A stretch of DNA of 63,123 bases, filler included, from Reticulomyxa filosa (taxonomy: Eukaryota; Protista; Foraminifera): the NCBI GenBank assembly GCA_000512085.1. It is 18 parts of 18 records of this genome, joined end to end, with 100 filler letters (N's around TTAATTAATTAA, not from the genome) between each part and the next. Parts side by side here need not be neighbours in the genome. Positions count along the whole stretch, not along the records: positions 30,959 to 38,647 come from ASPP01023705.1; 17 more parts are not named here. One strand, 5' to 3'. This document shows positions 30,959 through 38,748 of the stretch, piece after piece. The translations under genes and the position numbers were made by a program. A model generated the notes under the pieces. It was given only the letters and a program-made list of their open reading frames with translations, had not been told where the DNA came from and ran no database searches. The stretch's first letter is position 1; every line of letters begins with the position of its first letter.

Positions 30959-33080
30959 AACATAAGAGTGGCTTGTTCGACGTCCCTTTCCTTATCCTTT
31001 TTTTTCGACGGCTGCGGTGTGTCTTGACTTTGACTGACATCCAATTCGATCAAGTCATCCAAAATGCGCTTTTGGCTATCAAAGCGAAGCCGCGATTGGT
31101 TCACATAATTATATCTAGCGAGCAGCCCGCACATTTTGGCAAAAACGACTCCGGTGCAATACGCATCATAGCCGGCTTCATGAAAGCACGAGGAACGTGA
31201 ATCTGAGTAGTGATTGGGTCTGCCTCGACTGTGATACAATCTTCCATCTCTGTGCCATGTCACAACCGGCGAAGCCAAATTGCTGCGCAGTTTGAAATAC
31301 AATCGCTGCAATCCCGTTTTTCCATAGCGGTTATCAGTATTGTGCAACGTATACTTCCCAAGAGGATGCGGTAATACTTCGCACAAGTATTTGGTGTCGA
31401 TCACAATCGGAGGCATCAGTCCCTCCTGTCTTTTCTCTCTCTTGCTTTCTTTTTTATGATACATTGATCGTTGTGATTGCTGCTTTATCTGGTATTTTTG
31501 TTCCGCTTCGTCCAAATAGCCTTCGTCGACACCAACCTTGGCATTTGTGCTCGTGACCGAGTCGAAATTGTAATGACATGCCAGATACGCGTCAATGTAC
31601 TCGTTGCCGCCGTTCGCATCCAAACTCTTGGGGTCGAGCTTGCATCAAACGTATTGTACAAATGCGCCAGGTCGAGCATGCCATTGTGCATTACTATCGC
31701 CAGTTTGTGCTTGTGGCAAGCGTGCATTAAATCGTTCCACAATCGTGTCATCCCATAGATTTCGTCCAATTGTTTCAAGTATTGACGTTCTAACATTTCA
31801 CTGCATTTACACACATTACGTACTTATATATGTATATTTTAGAAAAGTGATACAAAAAAAAAAATTAAATCTCCCTTTTTTTTTTTTAATTAAAAAAAAA
31901 AAGGGGGGTATTACGTATAAACATAAATAGTGTTTATACATTATATGTGTATAATGTACCTGAGCTTTCGAAAAGCCTCCGTTTTGTTTGAAAAGCAAAT
32001 AAAATCGAACTTGCGACAAGGGTTTTGTGCAAAAACGAGGTTTTGGCAGCGCGCCAAAACGCGTTCGCGACTGTCGGGCGATGCGTTTTTGTACAGCTTT
32101 TGTAGACAACGGCCACACTCTTCAAAGATGAGACGGCTCACTTTCAATGATGGAACATCATCAAATTTCACCATTTCAAACTCGTTGTCCAAATCTCGCA
32201 TTTTTTGTTCAAATCGATTTAGCCATTTACCAACCTGTTCCTTATCCACATTCGTCGTCTGCATATTCAGTCCATTTTTTTGTGTCGCCATTGGCCAAAT
32301 GTCTTCTTTTTGAAAATATTTAAACAATTCTGGCATTTTCCGTGTCGCCATTTGTTCGATTTTTTTTTGTGATTTTAGCTTTTTTTTTTTGAAAAATAAT
32401 GTTTACATTAACATATACTTTTTTTTTTTCTCTCCCTTCGCTCCTCTTTTTCCCTTCCCCCCTTTTTTTTTTTTTTAAAAAAAAAAAAACATGGGACAAT
32501 TCAAAAAAGAATATGCGTGAAGCAACTCAACATCGAGATAGTTTTGATGTGGGATCCAAGAAATCCCCCCTTCAATCCACTTCTTCGGATCGAAGCCGTT
32601 CTCACATAAAAAACGCAATGACGACGCTTGAGAACCAAAGTTCCCGCTCAATTCTTTGCAAAAGTGAAACTCGTCGTGACACGGCGGAAATAATGTGAAA
32701 TTGAACGGGTAGCAAAACAGCTTTTCTTGCGTTTCTATTTGCATTTTTTGGCTTGTTGTATTATACATACAACTTCAGAAGAGACAGAGAGGGAGTGGGA
32801 ATATTGGGGGATAAAAAAATTTAAAAAAAAAATCTCAACTGTCGCCGGAAGAGATGAAAAATGCAATTCCTAGCTGTACCAGACAATATTCACCTCCTTT
32901 CTTCAACGATCTTCGCAATACTTCAGAGGGGCTGAGATGCAGCAGATCCATCTCGTTTTGTCCATGTAACCCAGTGAACTCACAGTCTATTGCTATAAAT
33001 GCAATATTTTGTGCATCCTCTTCGAGAATGCTACGAAATTTTTCGCAGGCATCATCAAAGTTGGAATTTGTTACGTCCAG
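30959..33080 (-). CDS. PARN-like CAF1/DEDDh poly(A)-specific ribonuclease (multi-exon, 3' truncated)
   Basis: DVTNSNF...FIAIDCEFTGL, VQLGIAFF, YPFNFTLFP, QASSLRFLCENGFD, VMHNGMLDLAHLY, IDTKYL and FHEAGYDAYCTG cover all DEDDh motifs. A 1-nt homopolymer frameshift lies near 31641. Confidence 0.92.
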
Positions 33081-34192
33081 GTTGTCGGATTATGTGATTA
33101 TTTGTCACAATAACAAAAAAGGTTCGTAATGGATTTAAACAAAAAATACGGAATATTGGATTATATTGCTGGTTTAGATAATTATATTTGCCTTTTACAG
33201 AAACTAACTGACAACGAATTGCTCTAGAGCAAAAATATTACAGCTCTTACGAATATAATTTTTGTCTGATGACTTATTTCATCTATTCTGCAATGAGTTA
33301 TAAACAACTATCTATTGCAAAAAATATTTCTAAACTTTAGCAAAAAAATTAAAAAACAAATTTTAACCAAATATCGAGCCGATATTGAACAATTGGATCA
33401 AAAATGCTAGGCACTGAATTTCTTATCGAAGGTGTACAAACGAGTTGAAAAATGGATGATTAAATATATTTTGTGATGTTTTGTACATTCTAAAATTGCT
33501 AACTGGATAAAATAACGGATTAAATTCCAAAATTATTACATAATATATTTTTTAGTCGATTAGTTTGCAGCACACCAGGAAGAGCCCAAGGTATGAAATT
33601 TTTCAAATTGATAAAAGGCCACGTGGTAGGCCACTGCACGTGAACTTGCCTTATTTTTTTAAGGTATGGACAAGCGCTTTGCTGTGAAGAATCACATACT
33701 TGTCTGATTGTGTTATATTTGAAATGAAATTATAACATATAATGCGTTCTGACGAATATGTTGCTCAATACAATAATAGTGTTGTCTACATCTCAACTGA
33801 AAGTGAGCGAAATAAGCAAGAGGTAGAAAAGAAAATAGAAGAAATTATTTGTGATAAGTTTTATAAGTGAGTTGGAAGGGAATGATAAGTAAATATTGAA
33901 GTATTCTTTAATAAATCTTAAGACGCAACGATAACAACAATCTAAATTGAATTTTTCTTGGGTTAATTGGAATAATGATTTTGATGCTTGCTTATAATTG
34001 GATGACAACAGACATTTTTTAAGCGTTGCACGTATTTAATTTTCTGATAAACATAATACTAAAAAAAGATTAAAAATAGTAACCCGAGTTCGTGGACAAC
34101 AGAGGAAAACACACGTTTTATAAAAACTCAAAAAGATTTCAGAAAAAAAGGGGGTAGAAGTAGATAATTTTAAAACATCAAAATAAAATATC

Positions 34193-34649
34193 ATGACTCA
34201 ACTTTCAACAGAGCCTTTGGAATCTCAAATCCGACGAGCAAATATTGAGCGCTTTCAATTTGGTCAAAAAGAAATTGAAGACCAATCGGGCAAGATTGTG
34301 GAATATGAAACCACTAAACGTGAGCACGAACAGGTATGCGTTTTTCAGTGATTCAAGCAAAACAAAAAAGTCATGACAAGTTTGTGTCACACCTTTCCGT
34401 GATTTTTCCATTGCATAGACAATGGAAATATTAAAATCAGTACCGCGAAGTCGCAAATGTTGGTATTCCAAGGACGGCATTCTCACTGAAATGACTGTGG
34501 ACGAAGTACTGCCAGTGCTGCACAACAACATCATATCTCTCCAAAAAGCCATCGATGACAATGTAAAAGAAGTGGAAATGAAGAGAAAAGCGTTGAGTGA
34601 ATTTGCTATCAAAAACAGATTAATTTCCCCTGCCGCTGCACCAAAATAA
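34193..34649 (+). CDS. PFDN2: Prefoldin subunit 2 (two exons: 34193-34333, 34419-34649)
   Basis: Spliced product ...SGKIVEYETTKREHEQ|TMEILKSVPRSRKCWYSKDGILTEMTVDEVLPVL...KRKALSEF matches PFDN2 (EH..V..TL....RKC...GGVLVERTVKEVLP.L). Phase-0 GT-AG intron. Confidence 0.85.
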
Positions 34650-35176
34650 TTGAAGTCCAATTTTGCTGACATTTTTAAAATAAGATTTAAAAAAAGCAAA
34701 GACATCAAACAATTTGTTCTGACAAAACATGTTGTTCACTTCTTGAAAATTTGTTTTATGTTCAAAATTTATGACAATGCAATCCTTTCCTCCCTTTTCT
34801 TGTCGCCTTGTCAGCTCTCTCAGTCTCTAATTACACAATTAGTATTTTTGTATGTGTGAACTCTTCAACAACTCCAAGAGAGCAATAAAATCAAATTAAA
34901 GAAGTTTTGGAATTATTTTGGAAAAAAAGGAGTAAAACGTAATATATTTTGTGTGTTAAAAATGAGCATATTCAAATTTTTTTATGACATGGCACACATG
35001 AAAAACCTTTTTAAAAGGAGTTATTACCTTTTGAAATTGAAAAAAAAGATTGTGAACGACTAAAAGATTACATTACCCTCAAGGGTTGAAAAAGATTTTT
35101 TTAAGAAAAACAACTGATTATACAAAATATTGACATACTCTCAAAAAAGGAGAAAGACAGGACAAGTAAAGGAATG

Positions 35177-37858
35177 TCAATTAAATCGAAATGGTGTTTG
35201 TGTACGTGATCCAAAGCTATTTTCATTATCTTTTGAGCTGGACATGTCCAAAGTAACAGACTGCAAACTCAAGTCACTTTGACTAACAACACTACTTCTT
35301 CTCCTTGCTGATTGTGAAAAAATCTCACCATAGTTTGCCTGCCGCATAACATTAATATCATTTACAGCTGCCAACGATGTTGATAACGTTTGTTGTCTGT
35401 TGAGTGTATAGTCCGTTTCTTTATCATTATGTTCAACATTTTTTGATCGTTTTTTGCTTTGTCGGAACAACAATGCGTGTTTTCCAATATCGAAACAATA
35501 TTTCAGTTGACGAAGGCGGAAAAACAGATAAGAGATCAATACGATCAAAAAAATGCCCATTTCGAAATTCCATGTCAAATGATGTGACTCCGCAAAGTGT
35601 CCCATTACAACTGCTATGAGCGCATGTATTAAGAAAAAGGCATAAGAAATGTTAAAAATGCGATCTAGCATAGTCAAATAAGGCACCTGGTTTTTTTAAA
35701 AAATTATTTATTTGAAAGCTGCATTCGTGTGAAAAAAAAAAGAGAAGGGGTCTTCCACACACAAAAAAAAACTAAAATAATAATGATCTCAACTGGAGGC
35801 AAACTTGCTCCCACAGTCCATTTAAATGTGAAGTAAGTCAATAATAGTGCCACAAGTCCATCCATGCGATCATAAATAGGTTCAAGTTCAAGAAAGTAAG
35901 AATTCATTGCGACAAAGTCAGTGATAAGCAAAGGGAACAAAACTTGGTACAAAAAATTTTCGGCACGTCTGTGAATCGGGATGTGTACAATTAAACGATG
36001 GAAAATGTGTCGTTTTTTTTTGAACTTTTTCAATTGGCAATACGGTTTGCCAATGTCCCAATTGACTCCTCCGAGTCCTAACAAAATGCTGTCTGTGGAG
36101 AACGCGGCACGTACATTCTTTTCGTCAAATCGCGCAAACTCCATGTCTTTGTCCAAATCGAACACGAGTTTCAACGTGTGAAAATCGAAAGGATACTTGT
36201 CCAAATGGAAGTATTGTGCAAATGTTCCGACCAAATGTGCTCTTTGGAAATATGCACCATTGTCCAATTTCATTATCGTCAACTCTCCACTTTTCGCGTA
36301 TCTGTCCTCCGCGCTGATCACATTGCTCACTTTGACGTTCCACGCCATGTCAAATGTTGAGTTGTCTTGTTGTTGTTTTTGTTGACGAAATGCAAACTCC
36401 TGAAGCGAGTTGCTTCCCGATGTGCAACATAAAAAATTAAAGTGACACCCAAACGACAGCGTTGCTGGCGCTATTGACGTTATGTGCTCGATTCGAACGT
36501 CCACTGCCAACTCTTGTGGTTCTGGTGGCAACTGTAACATCCAGGCTGCATTATACATTCACATATACCATTTTACACATATTTTGCTTGTTTTGTTGTT
36601 GTTCGCAAGTGGGAATGTTATCATGTCATGTATGAAACTTTTTTTGGGAAGGGGGAGGGAAGTCCCTCGCGTTCATATATTACCTTGTCGCAGTGGTATC
36701 AACATTAAACCAGTAATAAAATTCCACACTTTGTTCCAAGCTTCTTCCAGTTCAGCATCCCACGATGATGCCAATACATCTTGTAACATCGCAAAAAATG
36801 CTTTACGACCATAATGAAAGTGTTTTGGTTTCACACCTAAATCATAATGTCGCAAACCTAATTCATTTATGGCACGTACCATCGAATCCGTGTCGGTTTC
36901 TAATATTCGTAACACTTGTCCAAAGACCAACACAAAATGTACATTTGCTGCGCTTCCGAATATTTCAGTCATTGCCTTTTGTTTGTAGTTTGTTTTAAGT
37001 TTGAAACTTGGAGTAAGAAACCCTGTCAAAGGGGTACAACAACAAACAACGATTATTGATTTGAGTCAATCCAAACCTCATTTAATCGGAATAACACTTG
37101 AAAGAATACTTGTCCACATCGCTCAATATTTTGCTCAACCAAGTTCCATGAGCCTTGTGCTAAGGAAACCTGGTGAGAAGTGGGTTGGAGTTTTTCTATG
37201 CTGAAAGGAATTTCCTCGTGGGACACCAACATGACCATAACAAAAGCAGTATATTTTTCCCAAGCGGTTCGATTGGTCTCAGTCCACTGCGCTCCCAGTA
37301 AACTCCGAATCGTTCCTAACAAATGCTTACGGGTTTCCACTAGCTCTGACGAATCAATCCCTTGGGCTTCATGAATTTGCACAACGTGCCCCAAATACGA
37401 TGCCAACTCCATAAAGACGGGGTCTTTCTCAGTACCCTCCCAATTGTTTTCTTTGCTGTTTTGTTCGTTATTTTCGGCTATCTCCTCTTTTTCGGAGACT
37501 TTTTGTTTCAGCTCTTCTCCCATCTTTTTTATAACTATGTTCCACGCATCTATCACGGATGTCACGTTTAGTCCACGGCTTTGTAATGTCTCTTTTTTTT
37601 TTAATATTGCATTGTAGTTACACACAATGACATGACAAATTTTAATACATGCGGACACAACAAATAACCTTTTTCAACTCCTGAGTCTTTCGTAATACTT
37701 TCAGTAAATTCTTTGATAAGTTGTGCTCGCCTTGCGTACAGTTGATTCCAGGTTTTCATAACTATCTCTTTATCATCTTTTGTCAAGTTGTTCCAGTAGG
37801 TGAGAGCAGATAGTTCATGAGTTTGCATATTTTCTTTATTTGCATTTTTATTTTCCAT
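35177..37858 (-). CDS. Globin-globin-pentameric ligand-gated ion channel fusion (predicted 752 aa, 5 exons: 37858-37669, 37591-37077, 36975-36684, 36545-35794, 35686-35177)
   Basis: Two 3/3 globin folds (KTWNQL...QIHEAQGI...TAWEKY and GSWNLV...FFQVLF...EIF...LGLRHYDLGVKPKHF...EAWNKVW). These are followed by a pLGIC beta-domain with FHLDKYPFDFHTL, pre-M1 RR, M1 NFLYQVLFPLL, M2 DRMDGLVALLLTY, the M2-M3 loop SLPPVPYLTMLD, M3 and M4. All four GT-AG introns are phase-compatible and the exons total 2259 nt. Confidence 0.88.
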
Positions 37859-38165
37859 TTTTTCAATTGATTGTGAATATTGTTTTCAACAACCAAAAAA
37901 GACACGCCCAAGAACAGATTAGGAGTACATTTTTTTTTTCACAGCAATTAGATTTTTTTATTGAAATCATAAACTGATCTTGTTTTGTTTAAATGCAATT
38001 CTAATTTTCTCTGCAAACAAATTTTCGTGGCAAATAGTATAAAGATTCGTAAGAAATTTTTTCAAAAACTCTTCTTTTTTCCCCTTTTTCTCGTTTTGAC
38101 AAGGACATAAGTCTTTTTTTAAGGGTTAGTATATATAATCATCATCTGTCAAACAGAATCGCACA

Positions 38166-38579
38166 ATGACAGGAAAATCAAGGACTGATAGTCCTTATAT
38201 TGAAATTTATGAATATCAACGCAAGTCAGTGGTGTTTTGGAGGACCCCTTTTTTAATTAACGATCCCTCCCCGTTTGCAGTAGTGAAAGGGCATACGAAA
38301 AGTACCAAATCTTATCCACTTCAGTTTGGCAGATGTTTTTGAAAGATTTGCAATTGAAAAAATTGTGTTTGTGTCGAGTTTGGGATGTACTAAACAACAT
38401 ACACACATACACATGAAAACAAGAGCAATAGAAGAATATAAATTGCCAAATCATTTAGTTTGGGAAGGAGATTGGACAGTGAAGGTTGACTCCGCGACGA
38501 CAGATGATTTCGGATGGGTGTATTCAGCCAAATTCGATGGTACCTTTCACAATGATTTCAAATATTGTTACTACGTCAG
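38166..38579 (+). CDS. DysF (dysferlin/Pex24-type) domain protein, 5' part
   Basis: EIYEYQR...W..PFLINDP, then EEYKLPNHLVWEGDWTVKVDSATTDDFGWVYSAKF...YVR, the Trp-rich DysF signature. Truncated by the contig end. Confidence 0.8.
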
Positions 38580-38748
38580 GTCAAACAAAAAAAAAAAAAA
38601 AGGGGGAAGGAAAGGGACAAGAAAAAAAAAGGTTTAAAAAAAAAAAANNNNNNNNNNNNNNNNNNNNNNNNNNNNNNNNNNNNNNNNNNNNTTAATTAAT
38701 TAANNNNNNNNNNNNNNNNNNNNNNNNNNNNNNNNNNNNNNNNNNNNT

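Follow-up and report, generated by a model that had tools for sequence, protein, structure and literature searches.

Tandem globins fused to a pentameric ligand-gated ion channel in the foraminifer Reticulomyxa filosa, a candidate gas- or redox-gated receptor predicted to face the cytosol

Introduction

Ion channels of the pentameric ligand-gated type (pLGICs) serve as the textbook example of fast neurotransmitter receptors, and globin-coupled sensors as that of bacterial gas sensors. Here we analyse a locus at which these two kinds of protein appear to have been joined. It lies in a stretch of 63,123 nucleotides of DNA from the naked freshwater foraminifer Reticulomyxa filosa (assembly GCA_000512085.1), which we call the window and whose positions we use throughout. 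Positions 37858-35177, on the minus strand, correspond to a single five-exon gene for a di-globin pLGIC subunit, from which we infer a channel that probably faces the cytosol and may be gated by gas or redox state.

The closest described channels are the Pro-loop receptors ELIC, sTeLIC and GLIC. The R. filosa protein shares with them a beta-sandwich followed by four transmembrane helices, a Cys-less (F/Y)PFD motif, the pre-M1 Arg, the M1 Pro, an M2 helix that aligns without gaps and carries 0' Arg and 9' Leu, an LP..Y.T..D loop and a very short loop between M3 and M4. Unlike them, it places 470 residues of tandem globins before beta-1, has no signal peptide, shows a reversed charge bias, continues past M4 with ~100 amino acids (aa) of basic tail and, in this copy, has only a turn in place of loop C; identity is only ~15%. 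DeCLIC from Desulfofustis (6v4a, 7q3g, 9ftg), which ranks high in both the sequence and the fold comparisons, resembles the R. filosa protein in having an extra two-module domain before its beta-sandwich; in DeCLIC this domain modulates gating. The accessory lobes of DeCLIC are periplasmic and bind Ca2+ (PMC12664993). They are not haem globins, whereas the R. filosa modules are all-helical globins and predicted to be cytosolic.

On the sensor side, the globin-coupled sensors HemAT, DosC and AfGcHK, as well as HGbRL of Methylacidiphilum (3wfw, a globin fused to Roadblock/LC7 and the best single-sequence match of exon 3 in the Protein Data Bank, PDB), also fuse an N-terminal globin with His F8 to an output domain. 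The R. filosa protein differs from them in that its output is an ion channel, not a methyl-accepting chemotaxis protein, a cyclase, a kinase or a Roadblock domain, in that two globins stand in tandem instead of one, and in being encoded by a eukaryote. In tetrameric K+ channels modulated by haem and CO, such as BK/Slo1, haem and gases act on ion flux; haem is bound there on short motifs, with neither a globin domain nor a pLGIC scaffold.

According to the initial annotation of this locus, such an architecture is not known to have been described. We found no description either, whether of a globin-pLGIC fusion or of a pLGIC facing the cytosol, in a full-text literature search of incomplete coverage in which the pLGIC papers that contained 'globin' seemed, from their titles, to be unrelated. 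Jaiteh et al., in their inventory of pLGICs, do not refer to globins or to Rhizaria (PMC4795631), and the foraminiferal transcriptome paper mentions neither globins nor ion channels (PMC8153729).

A globin-channel fusion in one reading frame

We studied the channel half of the protein through its exons and the public model P0001, and the full-length fold through the homologue P0005. A HMMER search with exon 4 alone retrieved 60 relatives, of which 18 reached E<=1e-10, a level of homology that rules out chance. Globin sequence precedes the channel region in nine of these relatives, which are 700-941 aa long, and in the 509-aa model of a paralogue. The same fusion recurs in marine metagenome proteins and in proteins of 827-947 aa listed for Bolivina and Nonionella (Bolivina argentea and Nonionella stella sets of EukProt, which appear to be the poly(A) transcriptomes of PMC8153729).

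Two of these homologues, P0003 (724 aa) and P0005 (707 aa), come from eukaryotic scaffolds of the TARA marine metagenome, and each encodes two globins and the channel as one uninterrupted open reading frame (ORF). In R. filosa itself, the paralogue RFI_11007 (P0002, at locus L006) runs continuously from the H helix of globin 2 into the beta-sandwich within one exon (...CRALKESWMLHLPSEPAE...), and matches to exons 1 and 2 sit upstream of it, in a separately annotated gene. At each of its four junctions the window model lines up, without any gap, with the homologues that have no introns, and tblastn with P0005 matches all five exons in order. The key junction is that of intron 3, where the initial annotation had placed the H helix of globin 2 directly onto the beta-domain of the channel. 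After splicing it reads ...LIPLRQ-A-WMLQLPPEPQ; this sequence is collinear with P0002 (KE-S-WMLHLPSEPAE) and P0006, and the passage is uninterrupted in the paralogue and in the single-ORF homologues.

The channel domains of the 11 globin-coupled members group into a single clade (SH-aLRT 99), consistent with a single origin of the fusion, and within this clade the window copy pairs with its paralogue. On comparative sequence evidence the fusion is confirmed as real, globins and channel being in one reading frame both in the paralogue and in other foraminifera or marine eukaryotes. The proposed combination of two 3/3 globins and a pLGIC with four transmembrane helices in one polypeptide is borne out by these homologues together with the profile matches and the confident structure model described below.

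P0010, from the Bolivina argentea set, and P0061, from the Nonionella stella set, are both 827 aa long, fall in one 90%-identity cluster and give identical phmmer rows. This agreement may reflect carry-over between the data sets instead of true identity.

A Cys-less pentameric channel domain

By profile comparison and structure modelling, the C-terminal half of the protein is a Cys-less pLGIC. A single-sequence PDB search with the channel gave a marginal match to an ELIC chimera (E 0.023). A profile made from globin-coupled members only matched ELIC (the chimera best, E 1.9e-17) and, down to E 1e-11, DeCLIC, sTeLIC (covered over positions 2-318), GLIC and GABA-A, and a broader channel profile matched the pLGICs of the PDB over the full length, with E values to 6e-52. 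The AlphaFold2 (AF2) model of P0001:1-336 is a beta-sandwich with four helices (predicted local distance difference test, pLDDT, 90.6; predicted template-modelling score, pTM, 0.85), those of exon 5 being placed at 262-291 and 295-335 of P0001. When this model was compared using Foldseek, 50 of the 50 matches listed were pLGIC chains, with at least 500 at E<=0.001; the template-modelling score was 0.75 against GABA-A and GLIC and reached a maximum of 0.76.

The signature residues of the superfamily are also present. They comprise the YPFD Pro-loop, the pre-M1 Arg (in RR), the M1 Pro, 0' Arg and 9' Leu in M2, and LPP/VPYLTMLD; YPFD, the pre-M1 Arg and LP..PYLT.LD, on which the initial annotation had based its assignment, were located in exons 4-5. 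In alignment A2, P117, D119, P203, P248 and Y259 are invariant and R191, R225 and D264 are conserved in at least 90%, and P117 is invariant in 36 of the 36 rows of alignment A1. M2 aligns gaplessly with GABA-A and ELIC, the M3-M4 loop has only ~11 residues, and the beta-sandwich contains a conserved GGTDWD motif in addition to further invariant residues. With no cysteines flanking YPFD, no signal peptide and no long M3-M4 domain, the protein stands apart from the metazoan Cys-loop receptors. A three-copy complex prediction of the channel half that left the alignment unused scored 0.01, which speaks neither for nor against assembly.

Two tandem globins with a proximal histidine

Both N-terminal domains are, as judged from profile and residue matches, 3/3 globins with a proximal His F8. 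In the Pfam comparison proposed with the initial annotation, the globin half came out as expected, since Globin (PF00042, cut-off 22 bits) matched exon 2 at 25.7 bits (E 1.8e-5) and exon 3 at 38.1 bits (E 2.4e-9). The family profile of globin 2 (alignment A3) matched 3s1i at E 7.5e-24, and that of globin 1 matched PDB globins at E 1.2e-14. The best profile matches, over the whole length, were the Methylacidiphilum haemoglobins 3s1i and 3ubc, the Roadblock-fused 3wfw and neuroglobin; exon 3 as a single sequence matched 3wfw at E 2.2e-5.

The proximal His F8 is present in both globins and proved invariant among covering rows, 10/10 in globin 1 (alignment A4) and 11/11 in globin 2. That of globin 1 aligns with the haem-ligating His of 3s1i, and that of globin 2 with F8 of 3wfw and 1gdi. 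Globin 2 carries an invariant Phe CD1; for globin 1, this residue is confined to the Bolivina clade, with a gap in the clade of the window copy. Although the layout, from sensor to output, is that of a globin-coupled sensor, membership of the protoglobin-related lineage of sensor globins is not supported by the profile searches, in which matches to Protoglobin were sub-threshold (E 0.004-0.01) and limited to Bolivina-type members.

In the Bolivina-type proteins P0006, P0010 and P0013, residues 1-140 form a third N-terminal helical domain, faintly globin-like, before the two globins. The extra domain of P0013 matches the globin 1 region (domain E 0.0056) and may be a degenerate third globin.

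Predicted orientation in the membrane

A scan for hydrophobic segments in ten full-length members revealed no signal-like or transmembrane segment before M1 in any of them. The members carry 4-9 K+R just before M1 and 4-10 just after M4, compared with 0-1 between M1 and M2 and 0-2 between M3 and M4. In relatives from the same hit list whose N-terminus is hydrophobic the bias runs the other way, with 3-4 K/R in the M3-M4 loop and 0-1 after M4. Because of the lack of a signal peptide and the reversed K/R bias, the globins, the so-called extracellular domain and the C-terminal tail are predicted to be cytosolic. This orientation of the globins, beta-sandwich and tail, which had no place in the initial annotation, is the most likely one.

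The closest channels without globins are five metagenome proteins of 357-402 aa (P0016, P0018, P0020, P0029 and P0034) that form a sister clade of the globin-coupled channels. The N-termini of P0016, P0018 and P0034 are short and hydrophilic, without a signal peptide, so that the unusual orientation may predate the globin fusion. Other channel relatives, namely P0071 and the Paulinella chromatophora transcripts P0046, P0047 and P0057, have N-terminal extensions of 350-930 aa, and sub-threshold matches to PH (E 0.0016), TPR (E 0.007) and PDZ (E 0.0066) were obtained for these long-extension relatives. There are hints here that pLGICs devoid of a signal peptide may have recruited various cytosolic domains.

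Proposed gating mechanism and alternative explanations

In the AF2 model of full-length P0005 (pLDDT 79, pTM 0.57), six residues separate the H helix of globin 2 (320-347) from beta-1 at 354. The linker between globin 2 and the channel, of ~8 residues, is conserved (WMLxLPxEP; family form L/W-L-x-x-P-P-E/D-P), and through such a short conserved connection changes at the haem of globin 2 could be transmitted as movement, first to the top of the beta-sandwich and then to the gate in M2. Pentameric assembly is, to our knowledge, shared by all pLGICs; were the R. filosa subunits to form pentamers, each channel could hold as many as ten haem sites. If globin 2 bound O2, NO or CO, or if its haem changed redox state, its H helix, which is nearly continuous with beta-1, would shift, and this shift would alter the twist of the beta-sandwich and bias the 9'-Leu gate in M2. 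The protein would in this way report the intracellular gas or redox state as an ion flux through the plasma membrane or an internal membrane. Gating by O2, NO, CO or haem redox state is our inference. The Asp residues at -1' and 2' of M2 in the window copy hint at cation permeation, at positions that vary in the family. A parallel to the proposed coupling exists in DeCLIC, where N-terminal lobes modulate gating (PMC12664993).

A broader claim can be made, although only tentatively: this might be the first ionotropic receptor on which a diatomic gas or the redox state of haem acts directly as the gating signal, an 'inside-out' pLGIC with a ligand-binding domain turned to the cytosol, within a wider rhizarian clade of pLGICs that lacks signal peptides and has acquired varied cytosolic sensors (globins, possibly also PH and PDZ).

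Several observations weigh against the explanation as a whole. The Pfam comparison that detected the globins failed on the channel, since Neur_chan_LBD and Neur_chan_memb matched neither exon 4, exon 5 nor P0001. Close relatives match Neur_chan_memb at sub-threshold level only, while the more distant P0032 and P0040 pass both Pfam pLGIC models; the miss is a limit of model sensitivity and does not contradict the channel assignment. In addition, loop C of the window copy is a two-residue turn in the AF2 model, and ion selectivity residues differ among members. The splicing of intron 3 in R. filosa is argued from comparison with homologues, and the topology is argued indirectly. As for the globins, a clear Phe CD1 is missing from globin 1 in the R. 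filosa/metagenome clade, and the distal residue E7 varies, being Gln in 5 of the 10 members in which it is covered and Ala in the window copy. The aligned distal pocket of the window copy consists of Phe B10, Ala E7 and His E10, and that of the Bolivina proteins has Tyr B10 with Gln E7 in three of four rows and Phe B10 with Glu E7 in the fourth. A distal pocket that is not conserved would be unusual for a tuned gas sensor. Given this distal variation and the missing Phe CD1 in globin 1, haem binding seems likely in globin 2 and less certain in globin 1.

The same variability of the distal residues, and the same lack of Phe CD1 from globin 1 in the clade of the window copy, also count in favour of an alternative in which the fusion is real but the globins do not gate the channel in response to gas. 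They could instead be tethered enzymes or buffers (an NO dioxygenase, a store of O2 or haem), sensors of haem availability, or structural or assembly domains, with some other cytosolic ligand or ion opening the pore. Several further points suit this alternative: the best PDB matches of the globins are Methylacidiphilum single-domain globins and neuroglobin rather than classical sensor globins, the GGTDWD motif and the other invariant residues of the beta-sandwich could mark a separate binding site, and in the globin-free sister clade the channel functions without globins. However, the short conserved linker between H helix and beta-1 is found in every member, as would suit mechanical coupling more than loose tethering; both globins keep an invariant His F8 despite only ~25-35% identity; and the host organisms live across steep O2/NO gradients (PMC8153729). 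A role of the globins other than gas-driven gating is possible but, on balance, unlikely.

A second alternative retains the sensing function and turns the protein around, with the beta-sandwich and globins extracellular or lumenal, brought there by non-classical export or by an unrecognised upstream signal exon, and external O2 being sensed. In every characterised pLGIC that we know of, the beta-sandwich lies outside the cell; annelids possess extracellular globins; and the N-termini of gene models can be incomplete in fragmented assemblies. This canonical orientation is nevertheless improbable, since the members devoid of a signal-like or transmembrane segment before M1 are ten independent full-length proteins, among them models listed for Bolivina and Nonionella and intron-free ORFs whose Met follows upstream stops, the K/R bias runs counter to the one seen in relatives whose N-terminus is hydrophobic, and the basic Ser-rich tail after M4 looks cytosolic. 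It is far less probable still that the locus holds two genes as publicly annotated, a small globin protein that stops with the TGA at 36675-36673 and, apart from it, a channel, RFI_27346, starting from the ATG at 36540: although public models of 156 aa and 425 aa exist and in-frame ATGs occur at 36558 and 36540, this arrangement leaves out exons 1 and 3 despite their significant globin homology, leaves the conserved Trp and linker before the annotated Met, allows just 115 nucleotides (nt) from the stop to the next ATG, breaks a junction that is continuous coding sequence in homologues, including the paralogue of the same genome, and brings in 7 extra residues found in no homologue.

If the di-globin subunit does form a gas- or redox-gated channel, foraminifera living in oxic-anoxic, NO-rich sediments would gain an electrical indicator of O2, NO or redox state that works on the scale of milliseconds. 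Occurring naturally and being conserved, a fusion of this type would show that a haem domain can drive the gating machinery of pLGICs, and a cytosolic orientation as predicted would overturn the view that the 'extracellular domain' of a pLGIC always lies outside the cell. The intron-free homologues are ready constructs for electrophysiology and cryo-electron microscopy and could become gas-controlled channel tools.

Gene structure, public annotation and neighbouring genes

Window positions 30959-38647 are the entire 7689-bp contig ASPP01023705.1, and the whole gene, as initially described, lies inside it with its ATG and stop (Table 1). The five pieces that the initial annotation had joined through four GT-AG introns hold together, all exons being open in their own frame and the junctions collinear with homologues. 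The exons sum to 190+515+292+752+510 = 2259 nt of coding sequence (phases 1,0,1,0), that is, a subunit of 752 aa in which a hydrophilic N-terminus is followed by globin 1, globin 2, the linker, the beta-sandwich of a Cys-less pLGIC, M1-M4 and a tail that is basic and rich in Ser.

Table 1. Features of the di-globin channel gene, in window positions
Feature	Positions	Strand	Description
Exon 1	37669..37858	-	ATG 37858-37856; hydrophilic N-terminus without signal peptide; globin 1 A-C helices
Intron 1	37592..37668	-	77 nt, GT..AG, 27% GC, single AG; read-through stop 37603-37601
Exon 2	37077..37591	-	Globin 1 E-H helices and low-complexity insert; globin 2 A-B helices
Proximal His F8 of globin 1	37371..37373	-	Codon CAT, in ...VQIHEAQGI...
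Intron 2	36976..37076	-	101 nt, GT..AG
Exon 3	36684..36975	-	Globin 2 from CD region to H helix
Proximal His F8 of globin 2	36847..36849	-	Codon CAT, in ...LGLRHYDLGV...
Intron 3	36546..36683	-	138 nt, GT..AG; in-frame TGA 36675-36673; key globin 2/channel junction
Exon 4	35794..36545	-	Linker 36545-36517; beta-sandwich 36516-35968; M1 35964-35893; M2 35877-35809
YPFD motif of Pro-loop	36184..36195	-	Cys-loop equivalent without cysteines
Intron 4	35687..35793	-	107 nt, GT..AG
Exon 5	35177..35686	-	M2-M3 loop VPYLTMLD; M3 35671-35582; M4 and basic helical extension 35572-35450; stop TGA 35179-35177

All four introns are GT..AG, measure 77-138 nt and have a G+C content below that of the exons, and retention of any of them would introduce an in-frame stop (37603, 37055, 36675 and 35706, respectively). 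The split codons read G/AG (E) and G/CC (A). Exon 1 is open for 63 codons plus 1 nt, its ATG is the first start past a stop, it encodes no hydrophobic segment, and tblastn with the single-ORF homologue P0005 matches it at 37855-37685. At intron 1, where the tblastn match ran 12 codons into the intron, another acceptor was considered and ruled out, as there is no further AG and the globin 1 loop of the spliced product is only ~3 residues shorter than that of P0004 (hand count, alignment A4). The junction at intron 2 (...FRLNE/AMTEIF...) is gaplessly collinear with P0004 and P0005. At intron 3, no alternative AG preserves the frame from the donor at 36683. The tail encoded by exon 5 is Ser-rich, ~90 aa long, with 6 K/R within the 19 residues past M4.

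The public annotation cuts this gene into two models. The first, a 156-aa gene at 37523-37053, is part of exon 2 reading on into intron 2; the second, the 425-aa 'hypothetical protein RFI_27346' (P0001) at 36540-35177, begins at an internal Met; exons 1 and 3 are absent from both. The public donor of intron 4 (GT at 35772, 21 nt downstream) was rejected, since the added VEIIIIL is missing in 10 of 10 homologues and is the sole stretch with pLDDT <50 in the AF2 model. As far as sequence comparison goes, the initially proposed splice sites agree with the family better than the public models do, and the R. filosa annotation can be corrected at two loci, at each of which one gene was cut into two models.

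At the paralogue locus (ASPP01008059.1, 252-3301), also split, the matches to exons 1 and 2 lie inside a separate 384-aa gene at 252-1501, and the model RFI_11007 (1651-3301) begins in the middle of globin 2. Its M1 carries a 22-residue insert, QENLKKRKINTLKVVKFFFFPF, that occurs in no homologue and is probably a retained intron.

The contig of the window gene also contains a CAF1-family deadenylase (32768-31039, minus strand, 443 aa, PF04857) and an uncharacterised 166-aa gene (34422-35063, plus strand), neither of which is evidently linked to the channel gene.

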